Positions 8,715 through 19,684 of a stretch of DNA of 64,000 nucleotides are shown here, one piece after another. How positions within the stretch are numbered: position 1 is the first letter of the stretch; each line of letters starts with the position of its first letter. This stretch comes from Pavona decussata. Its lineage: Eukaryota. A program made the position numbers and the translations under genes. The DNA lies in assembly GCA_977016875.1 (NCBI GenBank), contig CDRNST010000196.1, forward strand, positions 868,001 through 932,000. Reading direction: 5' to 3'. A model generated the notes under the pieces. That model made no database searches, had not been told where the DNA came from, and saw nothing but the letters and a program-made list of their open reading frames with translations.

Positions 8715-11700
8715 CTATGAAGCAAATAAAAGACGCTTAGCTTAAACTAAACGGAAATATCTTATGGATCTTAATGATTGTGGTTATTCTCTTTGTTGCT
8801 GTTGTTGTTACTCCTGTTTGCAGTTATTAAGATGCATCATCTCACCGCAGGCACACCGTAATTAAAGTTTCATTGAGACATGTACTGTGTTATATGGAAA
8901 TGGGAGGTGGTTTTCTTCTTGACCGGATGCAAGTAGTCAAATTTTCACCATCCCCAAGCTAATGTTTGGGGCATCTGAAATAGCAATTTCTACATCAATG
9001 ATTAAACATGCCGATTCGATTTATCGTTTGATTTGGAATCTAAGATAAAATGGAATTCCGACTTGCGTTGAATATTGGAAATCATGATTGATATTGATTC
9101 TATATATGAACCAGGCGAGTAACACGCATAAATAAAGAAATATTTGGAAGACTATCAGAGTTCTTGGAGGTTTTGTTTCTAAATGATCGACCTTTGTCAA
9201 TTGGTGGGAAAGAGGGCTTGCCTTTGTACGATTTCGTGTGTGCCTACCTTTTGGTATAGAGTTCGATAACAAACTGGAGAAACTAACTGAACTAAATGGT
9301 ACCACAGGGTCATTTTCAGTGGTAACGTTGACTCTGGGTCTGGGTTTAAAATTCTGTCCATTTTCAAGATTGGTTCACATTCCTTAGCTTTGTCCACCCT
9401 CAGAGACTGAGAGGCATATAACTATATTTTTTTCTGTTTTGTCTTATATTTTTGTTTTGTTTGTGGTGAGCTCGATATCGCAAGTAATTCCGTCGTCCCA
9501 TCCCATTAGTCTAGGAGTTAGTTTTGTGGCTAAATTAATGTGTACTTACGAAAATTGTACAGATTGTTTCTTGTGCTGAATACAATGCCCATGTAAACTA
9601 CCTTGACTTGGTAACTTTTGTACTCACGTTTTTTTCGACCATGCCCCAACTGATTTCACCAGACACTAAAGGTGCGTTCGATTGACCCTATTCCGGAATA
9701 GGAATACATACGGCGACGACAAGAAATCCCTCATAAAAGGTTTTAGGACTGACTGGAGTACGAGACGGCTCTTAAATTCTCATGTGTCAGCGATAGTTTG
9801 TAGAATTGGCCTACCAAATTTCTTAAAAAGAAAAATTTTACAGCCATTCCGCTTATTCTTATTCCGGAATAAAGTCAATCGTACGCAACCTTAGTGTGAA
9901 CAGAGCCTAAGTTCTCTAGCACTCAGACTATTTAAAGATGAACAATAATACTTACCAAAATCACTTAAGCAGAAGCGCCTCATGACATGTCTCTTGTTGC
10001 ATTTCTTATTACAGACTTGTGGAGGTGGCAGGGGCGTAACCTCAGGACCTGATGAATTGAAACGTGGGTGGTAAATCCACGGCTCTTTGTCTGTATGAAA
10101 AAAAAAACACTATAATTGTTATCTTGATATCACACTGAGAGTCTAGGAGTGTAATTAAGGGATCCTCTGTTAGTACAATTTCACAATCAGTATTATTAGC
10201 ACCATTAACATCATCATCATCATCAACATCTTCATCATTGTTAACATCATTATCATTGCTATTATCATCATCATTATTATCATCATCATCATCATGAAAA
10301 CAACGTGAAACACTGCAAATTACATTGTAACTTCTAAAAATGTCTTTCACAATGAAAACTGAAGTGACATTTTCAAGTCATATTGAGTTGATCCTCTTAG
10401 TTGCTGCTAAAGATATCGGCTCTAACTTCGTGCCCATGTCCCTCCGATTCTTGACTTGATTACGATCGTAAACTGTTGTGCAGCGTTGGAGAGAAGGGCA
10501 CATTTGATTTTAATTAACAAAGAAACACGTCAAAGCTCTCTTGGGGCCACCTTAGGCAGTTTATCTCATGTTTCGCTAAGTTTCAAAACTTGCAACAAAA
10601 TTACTTTGAAATCGTAATGAAAAATCGATGGTGCTTTACACAGACAATTTGAAGTAGCACTCACGCGATTACTGCTAACAGTTGCGCTAGAAGAAGATAC
10701 TTCTGAAACGGTCGATTTCGTTAATATCGAGGATTAAGATGTGGCTAAAACGAGACTGCTCAAAACTACATTCTAGGATTGTCAACCTGACTCAAAAAGC
10801 ATGCTATTATTTTTCCAAATTGGCCAAACTAAGTTCTATTTTATTATGATGAGCTGGGGTGCAGCCTACAAAACAAAACTAATACAAATACAAGCTAAAC
10901 AAAATCAATGTATACAGAATATATTCTAAACTCAAAGGAGAGAAAATCCCAGTATTTATTAATATGCGTGTGTGTAATCTATATCATTATGGAGGACGAT
11001 ACTTTTCTTCTAGTCGCATTTACTCTAACCGTGGCGCGGCAGTGACCAGCTCAAAAGCTAATGGCTTAGTCTTGTCACTGCGCACAAATTTTCTAATTGT
11101 TTTCTTGCTGCCGTTTTCTTATTGTATTTATCTTCTCCTTAAACCTTATCCTTTTAAAATATGTATGTACCTTGTAAACAATGCAAAAACAAAAGTAAAA
11201 TGAAAACCTAATCTAATCTATAAGATAAATTAACGTATATTGTCCCGAGCCTCATACCCAGTCTGATCTACTTACCAGCGACGCAGTGTCGCTTCAGAGT
11301 GAGGCTGAGTGGTCCCCATATGTTGCTTCCGGTCATTTCAATGAAGCTGATATTAATGGTCAACAGGGTCTCTCCACTTACTTTACCAGTGCATGGAAAT
11401 CTGACGCGAAAGCCTGACAACGAATGTAATACGGAATTCAGATTAATATATACTTAAGCTTATACAATGTCGACTGCACCGGGGCGATTTTACCTCTCCT
11501 AGCTTTTAGTTTTTAGCTTGTGAAAGCAGACACTTTTTCTCTAGTCCAGCTTTTGTCCCAACTGCCAAAGGCATACGCTCCCTCAGGCTAGATGTTGCCA
11601 AGCAAAGATTTGAGTTTTAGACTGAGCAAACGGAAATAGCACTCGTCGTGTAACAAAACAAGATTCAAAGTATGCTACTATCTCTTATCGTTCACAATAC

Positions 11701-19684: not shown

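Follow-up and report, generated by a model that had tools for sequence, protein, structure and literature searches.

Is a coral gene in which a WIF domain is joined to an NTR domain a genuine product of module fusion, and do its introns still record how the two halves came together? The question is raised by a locus on the minus strand of a 64,000-nucleotide (nt) stretch of the Pavona decussata genome (GenBank assembly GCA_977016875.1, contig CDRNST010000196.1, positions 868,001 to 932,000), which we refer to as the window and in whose coordinates positions are given (no runs of N; GC content, ~38%). An initial annotation, made from the letters alone, had taken the intron phases of this locus to mean that two ancient, phase-1-bounded modules had been joined by intronic recombination. 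Our analysis shows that the gene, here called WIF-NTR, is a real and expressed stony-coral gene of six exons, and makes it likely that both domains brought their ancestral introns to it and that the two halves were joined at the DNA level, in phase 1, before the split between Anthozoa and Scyphozoa.

Reading the exons from the sequence places the gene at 19684..8395, with exons 1 to 6 (E1 to E6) measuring 127, 137, 100, 138, 135 and 320 nt; all five introns are bounded by GT..AG, the cumulative exon lengths give intron phases of 1, 0, 1, 1 and 1, and the coding sequence (CDS) comes to 957 nt, or 318 codons (coordinates in Table 1). Exon 1 has a hydrophobic, signal-like N terminus, ends in ..SRFLY at a phase-1 donor (G/GTAAGT, where, as in the motifs below, the slash marks the splice site) and matches residues 1 to 42 of transcript-derived orthologues. 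Exon 4 stops two residues past the last WIF cysteine (..HCVA/), and exon 5 opens with a low-complexity linker of 27 residues, which is followed by the first three NTR cysteines. The initial annotation had correctly read the sizes and phases of the four WIF exons (1, 0, 1, 1), the phase-1 intron after the last WIF cysteine and the phase-1 intron at FCLSDF/V within the NTR domain. Its interval for the gene (9956-19684) was right at the start but ended one exon short, with the main NTR exon and the stop codon lying beyond it, at 8714..8395.

That the two halves belong to one messenger was evident from assembled reads. Contigs of four runs, whose RNA type is a guess (they are labelled "RNA?"), were placed on window positions 8300-14299. 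The joints 8714/9956 and 10090/11276 are exact (CT..AC on the plus strand, and hence GT..AG on the gene strand) in X6, X7 and X12, three runs from three different studies, and a 1040-nt contig comprises E6, E5 and E4 together with 388 nt upstream, a length equal to that of E1, E2 and E3 (364 nt) plus 24 nt. Moreover, the translations of the six exons tile transcript-derived orthologues of 318 to 323 residues, with a single leftover residue wherever the junction is in phase 1 and no residue left over where it is in phase 0; in a transcript contig from Acropora, WIF and NTR lie within one open reading frame (ORF), and full-length, single-ORF WIF-NTR transcripts are present in several genera. Since contigs from three studies splice E4, E5 and E6 at exactly these sites, the fusion is a real mRNA and the gene is expressed. 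The earlier claim of a gene-level fusion, as opposed to an annotation artefact, is thus borne out by the spliced contigs and the orthologues, but it is not shown by the intron phases themselves. Separately, run X19, a coral metatranscriptome, contained unspliced contigs covering 8375-8762 and 9906-10194, with ~4-6% divergence and a 3-nt deletion at 10098; these contigs are probably derived from a related coral, either its genomic DNA or its pre-mRNA.

Domain searches were performed with single exons or with orthologues, the joined CDS being used only in a local script for phases and split codons. In the exon-wise Pfam search, exons 2, 3 and 4 match successive segments of the WIF profile (PF02019) with 11.7, 26.4 and 18.9 bits, a total of ~57 against a cut-off of 25, and an orthologue (P0007) scores 83.3 bits over profile positions 1-131. 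Exon 6 matches NTR (PF01759) at positions 11-102 of 106 with 40.8 bits (E value, 2e-10), and an Atlas look-up of this exon likewise returned NTR only. Six NTR cysteines (C193, C197, C207, C260, C262 and C312) are invariant among 10 orthologues. Sequence searches of the PDB gave WIF-1 (E value, 4.6e-10) and the NTR domain of netrin-1 (E value, 2.4e-7). A structural model of an orthologue pointed the same way for both halves: the N-terminal half matches WIF-1 (2ygn; TM score, 0.79; root mean square deviation, 2.9) and Drl-2 (7me5; TM score, 0.76), and the C-terminal half matches the NTR folds of PCOLCE and TIMP. Confidence in this model is moderate (mean predicted local distance difference test score [pLDDT], 66; WIF domain, 70 to 86), and residues 170-192, the linker, are predicted to be disordered (pLDDT, ~31). 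The Pfam scans of exons and orthologues revealed no FZ, EGF, laminin N-terminal or laminin-EGF domain; WIF is followed by NTR, and the gene has neither a transmembrane segment nor a kinase, with its stop codon following the NTR domain. In summary, the product is a secreted protein of ~318 residues, composed of a signal peptide, a WIF domain, a disordered linker and a C-terminal NTR domain.

Intron positions compared with RYK and other NTR genes

The P. decussata genome contains two true WIF loci, WIF-NTR itself and RYK (contig C436), the latter being recognized by its downstream transmembrane and kinase exons. With WIF exons of 112 (from the ATG), 137, 103 and 141 nt and phases of 1, 0, 1 and 1, RYK is interrupted in the same way as WIF-NTR. 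In both genes, intron 1 splits a codon nine residues before the conserved D-G; intron 2, in phase 0, falls within one variable loop (profile positions ~52 to 56); intron 3 splits the codon right before F-x-V-x-x-x-C; and intron 4 lies two residues past the last cysteine, where the WIF module of RYK ends. All four introns therefore agree in phase and three of the four agree in exact position, with the remaining one within the same loop, out of ~420 possible codon-phase sites. This correspondence is far beyond chance and is as module homology predicts; the coincidence with RYK introns on which the initial annotation depended was thus found in the RYK gene of the same genome.

The comparison did not bear out the description of both modules as bounded by phase-1 introns. 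In WIF-NTR and RYK alike, the signal peptide and the start of the WIF domain share exon 1 with no intron between them, and hence the phase-1 boundary of WIF exists on its 3' side only, while NTR, being C-terminal, has no 3' boundary intron. As for a wider comparison, no locus combining WIF with EGF was found in this genome, a word search based on the WIF part of P0007 yielded scleractinian WIF-NTR proteins only, with no bilaterian WIF1 or RYK among them, and no literature giving intron phases of WIF1 or RYK was found. A third, sub-threshold WIF match in the genome (C60:5384051) was rejected as spurious. It lies in a tandem satellite of more than 10 kb (C60:5382600-5394000), the translation of which (..KSIVYSIRMKIRP..) mimics the profile.

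On the NTR side, the genome offered 13 loci for comparison. In all 13, the main NTR exon opens at a phase-1 acceptor directly before the [V/A]-[I/L]-[K/R] strand. The corresponding donors, consisting of a cysteine motif followed by g/gt, could be resolved in netrin (FCRKDF), in three tandem mucin-like genes (YC.SDF), in five C3-like genes (C..Y.Y), in an sFRP3-like gene (..SYRF; exons placed via coral homologues) and in one further sFRP. Furthermore, the first NTR exon of the netrin, C3-like, mucin-like and sFRP3-like genes is short and symmetric (1-1), opening 1 to 6 residues ahead of the first cysteine (60 nt in netrin; 81 nt in the sFRP3-like gene, where the preceding CRD exon ends in phase 1). 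The plan of the sFRP3-like gene (CRD exon, phase 1, mini-exon, phase 1, main exon) parallels that of WIF-NTR. The phase-1 intron that the initial annotation had placed at an equivalent position in sFRP and netrin genes is indeed present in the coral netrin and in one coral sFRP, the sFRP3-like gene. However, this internal intron is common to all NTR families of the genome and is not diagnostic of an sFRP or netrin donor.

Nor did sequence similarity single out a donor. Within the genome, netrin is the best match to the NTR domain of WIF-NTR, albeit a weak one (37.7 bits, versus 19-20 bits for the sFRP NTR domains), and by sequence, the domain is not sFRP-like. In the NTR tree, WIF-NTR forms a clade (support, 99/98) on a long stem, with its sister group unplaced.

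Some NTR loci deserve mention in their own right. For one sFRP (C27b), the motif first chosen for the mini-exon, ..FCRAKYD, is probably incorrect. C-x2-C..CAANDL fits better and sits immediately upstream of the last exon, although no consistent GT donor was found for it; the gene may be degenerate. The three tandem genes with a C-terminal NTR domain are located at C239:2258001-2278000; the first is preceded by a mucin-like, Ser/Thr-rich ORF of ~1390 codons, and their architecture was not matched to a known NTR family. Four C3/TEP-like C-terminal NTR (C345C) exons lie within 135 kb at C19:2086177-2219478, with one more on C161, and these genes follow the same two-exon NTR plan throughout.

Family distribution and origin of the fusion

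A HMMER scan with exon 6 returned only 26 proteins at an E value of ≤0.001 among 1.84 billion representatives, and the full-length ones combine WIF with NTR. Their sources are Stylophora, Nematostella, Actinia and the scyphozoan Sanderia; more members were found in Pocillopora, Porites, Acropora, Montipora, Oculina and Desmophyllum. Their names in the source databases are inconsistent ("uncharacterized," "RYK-like," "shifted-like," "Netrin-5" and "WIF1"). Three long matches from the representative search (P0016, P0017 and P0019) turned out to be WD40 proteins and were discarded as false positives.

The comparison with anthozoan orthologues that the initial annotation had called for showed a conserved gene plan. 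In Pocillopora verrucosa, where a RefSeq protein could be mapped exactly onto its contig, the six-exon plan is kept, with junctions at CDS positions 127, 264, 364, 502 and 634 and phases of 1, 0, 1, 1 and 1. The readable introns also match in Actinia (introns 1 to 3) and in Nematostella (introns 1, 2, 3 and 5; the junction intron, intron 4, could not be read exactly), and an ENA contig (ERZ25073789:ctg144979) that is ~40% identical in the NTR domain shares all five introns in both site and phase. The six-exon plan is as old as the WIF-NTR family. Because the Sanderia protein carries both WIF and NTR, we infer from its sequence that the family predates the split between anthozoans and scyphozoans.

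Two peculiarities of individual orthologues were noted. In Nematostella (GCA_000209225.1, DS469617.1; L038:13200-14470), the 3' end of exon 4 (..WGPLHLALRRRCRA..) occurs in about ten or more tandem copies, and the 5' half of the exon was not found; the old model EDO38872 (296 residues) contains repeat units (PYEDDV..) where WIF exons 3 and 4 would be expected. The array could be a genuine minisatellite or else a product of the assembly. In Acropora, isoform X1 (P0077/P0081 versus P0078/P0079) is longer by 25 residues (348 versus 323), which are inserted between exons 1 and 2; this points to a 75-nt cassette exon, optional and of phase 1-1, within intron 1.

How, then, were the two halves joined? 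The phase of the junction intron equals the boundary phase of both kinds of parent, that is, of the 3' end of the RYK WIF module and of the 5' end of the NTR domain in the netrin, C3-like, mucin-like and sFRP3-like genes, and the internal introns of the parent modules have been kept in both halves. As the simplest history, we propose that a single event at the DNA level, either recombination or a fusion by deletion or read-through, connected two introns: the one that follows WIF exon 4 in a RYK/WIF1-type gene and the one that precedes the first NTR exon in an NTR gene. This would have placed the part of the former gene from promoter to exon 4 before two NTR exons, replacing its 3' part and keeping the frame. 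Because exon 1 of WIF-NTR, like that of RYK, encodes the signal peptide together with the start of WIF, the event was a 3'-end swap or fusion and not the insertion of a symmetric 1-1 cassette. The intronic recombination suggested in the initial annotation is supported at its core, in that the introns coincide and the junction is in phase 1, but not in its details, since WIF is not a 1-1 module and the NTR intron is not diagnostic.

Several observations weigh against this reconstruction. Phase compatibility is needed for intronic recombination but is not proof of it; phase 1 is the usual intron phase at the borders of extracellular modules (Patthy's class 1-1 modules), and since it is so common there, a compatible phase says little about the mechanism. 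Furthermore, the distance from the start of exon 5 to the first NTR cysteine is 27 codons, versus 1 to 2 in the mini-exons of the netrin, C3-like and mucin-like genes, so that the junction acceptor is not literally the one in other NTR genes. This objection is softened by the linker lengths of the orthologues (13 to 27 residues) and of the sFRP3-like gene (6 residues); given that the linker is variable in length and predicted to be disordered, linker growth or a shifted acceptor is a plausible explanation of where exon 5 starts. In addition, the donor families cannot be named, as the NTR clade is long-stemmed and neither the tree nor BLAST placed a sister, and the "ancient" intron sites rest on within-cnidarian paralogues. 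Lastly, the RNA labels of the runs were guessed, yet contigs derived from DNA could not give exact removal of GT-AG introns.

Among the alternatives, we weighed the possibility that a neighbouring WIF-only 5' gene and an NTR gene were fused via intergenic loss and read-through splicing, or that WIF-NTR is the older arrangement from which the other architectures were derived. For the data to hold, it is enough that the two halves came as intron-containing genomic DNA and that their phases match; nothing here dates or orients the event, and the variable exon 5 linker could be exonized former intergenic or intronic sequence. However, no WIF or NTR paralogue adjoins the gene in the window or on the contig, where this locus is the only one, and RYK sits on another contig. 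We consider such a history unlikely, and its outcome would be mechanistically almost equal to exon shuffling, which makes it a variant of the proposed phase-1 join rather than a contradiction of it.

Coincidental placement or parallel gain of the shared introns, which would strip the phase pattern of historical information, appears highly improbable. While the agreement of intron 2 with RYK extends no further than a shared variable loop and phase 1 is favoured generally at module borders, the agreement of the WIF introns with RYK (to the residue in three of four cases and in phase in all four), the identical placement, to the residue, of the NTR intron across 13 of 13 loci, which belong to at least five gene families, and the retention of these positions at ~40% protein identity speak against it. 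Just as little probability, if not less, attaches to the WIF-NTR reading frame being a modelling or assembly artefact that merges two genes, or to the NTR half being a retrocopy. Gene models of Pocillopora damicornis and Acropora cervicornis are indeed split into "WIF" and "NTR domain-containing" fragments, and the old Nematostella model is wrong in its middle, but the exact splicing of E4, E5 and E6 in the contigs of three studies and the single-ORF transcripts of several genera contradict an artefact, and the intron still present in the NTR half excludes a retrocopy origin. A phase-1 join of two intron-containing modules thus remains our preferred account of the gene.

Features of the locus and of the window

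Table 1. Exons and introns of the P. decussata WIF-NTR gene in window coordinates (all on the minus strand)
Feature	Position (strand)	Description
Exon 1	19684..19558 (-)	127 nt from ATG; signal peptide and N-terminal WIF strand
Intron 1	19557..17007 (-)	Phase 1, GT..AG; position and phase as in RYK intron 1 (KKIL/[G]VEGD..)
Exon 2	17006..16870 (-)	137 nt; WIF profile 15-51; RYK exon 2 likewise 137 nt
Intron 2	16869..14717 (-)	Phase 0, GT..AG; loop and phase as in RYK intron 2
Exon 3	14716..14617 (-)	100 nt; WIF profile 56-87; exceeds the Pfam cut-off by itself (26.4 bits)
Intron 3	14616..11414 (-)	Phase 1; position identical to RYK (..VPxxxK/[x]FxVxxxC)
Exon 4	11413..11276 (-)	138 nt, symmetric 1-1; WIF profile 90-131, with both cysteines of the domain; RNA contig coverage
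Intron 4 (WIF/NTR junction)	11275..10091 (-)	Phase 1, 1185 nt
Exon 5	10090..9956 (-)	135 nt, symmetric 1-1; linker and NTR N-terminal piece, C-x3-C-x9-C-LSDF
Intron 5	9955..8715 (-)	Phase 1, 1241 nt; within NTR at FCLSDF/[V]IKAR
Exon 6	8714..8395 (-)	317 nt plus TAG; main NTR body, C-x-C and last Cys, basic C terminus

Two of the introns contain repeats. A (CAT)n/18-mer microsatellite in intron 4 (10203-10295) gives rise to long mechanical ORFs on the minus strand, rich in Asp/Asn and in Met/Ile, that are non-coding. In intron 5, a short, very high-copy repeat spans ~9660-9890, where the RNA-type contigs reach a summed depth of 500 to 4000 and where many loose ends and internal "skips" were seen, unlike in the neighbouring intron sequence; this is probably a SINE/MITE-like element that is transcribed from many loci.

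Elsewhere in the window, two open stretches at 43241-45835 (+) match successive parts of the Tektin profile (1-113 and 132-260), consecutive matches that indicate a tektin gene on the plus strand. An uninterrupted ORF of 1382 codons occupies 58724-62872 (-), where GC and AT skew are strong. Its only match was a weak one to the coiled-coil family DUF7491 (21.5 bits, below the cut-off), and it could be either a large single-exon gene or a repeat-derived ORF.

Putative function and comparison with known systems

Judged from its domains only, the protein would be an extracellular Wnt binder, with the WIF domain holding the Wnt lipid. The basic NTR domain, which takes the place of the EGF repeats of WIF1 or of the CRD partner in sFRP, may tether the protein to the matrix or to heparan sulphate, or may provide a second contact with Wnt. 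By analogy, WIF-NTR probably works like WIF1, with a matrix-binding C-terminal part, or like an sFRP, while being a member of neither family.

In the Wnt-evolution and NTR literature that we searched, no description of this architecture or family was found. A survey of NTR proteins lists no WIF-NTR (PMC3516229), a survey of the Wnt pathway reported WIF to be absent from Nematostella and a probable bilaterian novelty (PMC2959043), and a coral paper mentions a "WIF1-like" Acropora locus that has a different gene number (bioRxiv 10.1101/349910). Tentatively, and with more reserve than for the join itself, we propose that WIF-NTR is a cnidarian-wide, undescribed secreted Wnt modulator that was assembled once, by a phase-1 join before the split between Anthozoa and Medusozoa, and that fills the role of WIF1, a gene reported to be missing from cnidarians. 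If so, it would represent a third solution, beside WIF plus EGF and CRD plus NTR, to combining a Wnt-binding domain with a matrix-binding tail, and should the protein bind Wnts, the inventory of cnidarian Wnt antagonists would gain a new entry. The gene also offers a clean, checkable case of a module-built extracellular signalling protein, with parental introns visible, a compatible junction phase and a product kept across cnidarian classes, and it flags a gene family that is inconsistently labelled in public annotation. What the introns provide is confirmation more than surprise. This is a textbook kind of module shuffling, and it produced a domain combination that we did not find described in the literature.

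With the class 1-1 shuffling of Patthy, WIF-NTR shares the phase-1 joins and the retention of internal parental introns by both modules, but its WIF side has no 5' intron after the signal peptide. The C-terminal NTR domain of netrin (domain C) is the closest by sequence, both in the coral's own genome and in the PDB, and likewise has a phase-1 intron after F-C-x-x-D-F, together with a 1-1 mini-exon; netrin, however, carries laminin N-terminal and laminin-EGF domains that WIF-NTR lacks, and the tree does not make it the sister. The sFRP family (Frizzled CRD plus NTR) is represented by the coral sFRP3-like gene, which shares the gene plan of a Wnt-binding domain followed by phase-1 NTR exons, but sFRP has a CRD where WIF-NTR has WIF, and its NTR domain starts with C-x2-C, compared with C-x3-C in WIF-NTR. 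WIF1/Shifted (WIF, five EGF repeats and a tail) has secretion and an N-terminal WIF domain in common with WIF-NTR and is the best sequence match among solved structures; where WIF1 continues with five EGF repeats and a hydrophilic tail, however, WIF-NTR has its NTR domain. Finally, RYK/Derailed (WIF, transmembrane segment and pseudokinase), of which Drl-2 is the top structural match for the WIF half of the orthologue model, has the same four WIF intron sites and phases; past the phase-1 intron that ends the WIF domain, RYK continues into its stalk, transmembrane segment and kinase, whereas WIF-NTR continues into two NTR exons and a stop codon.

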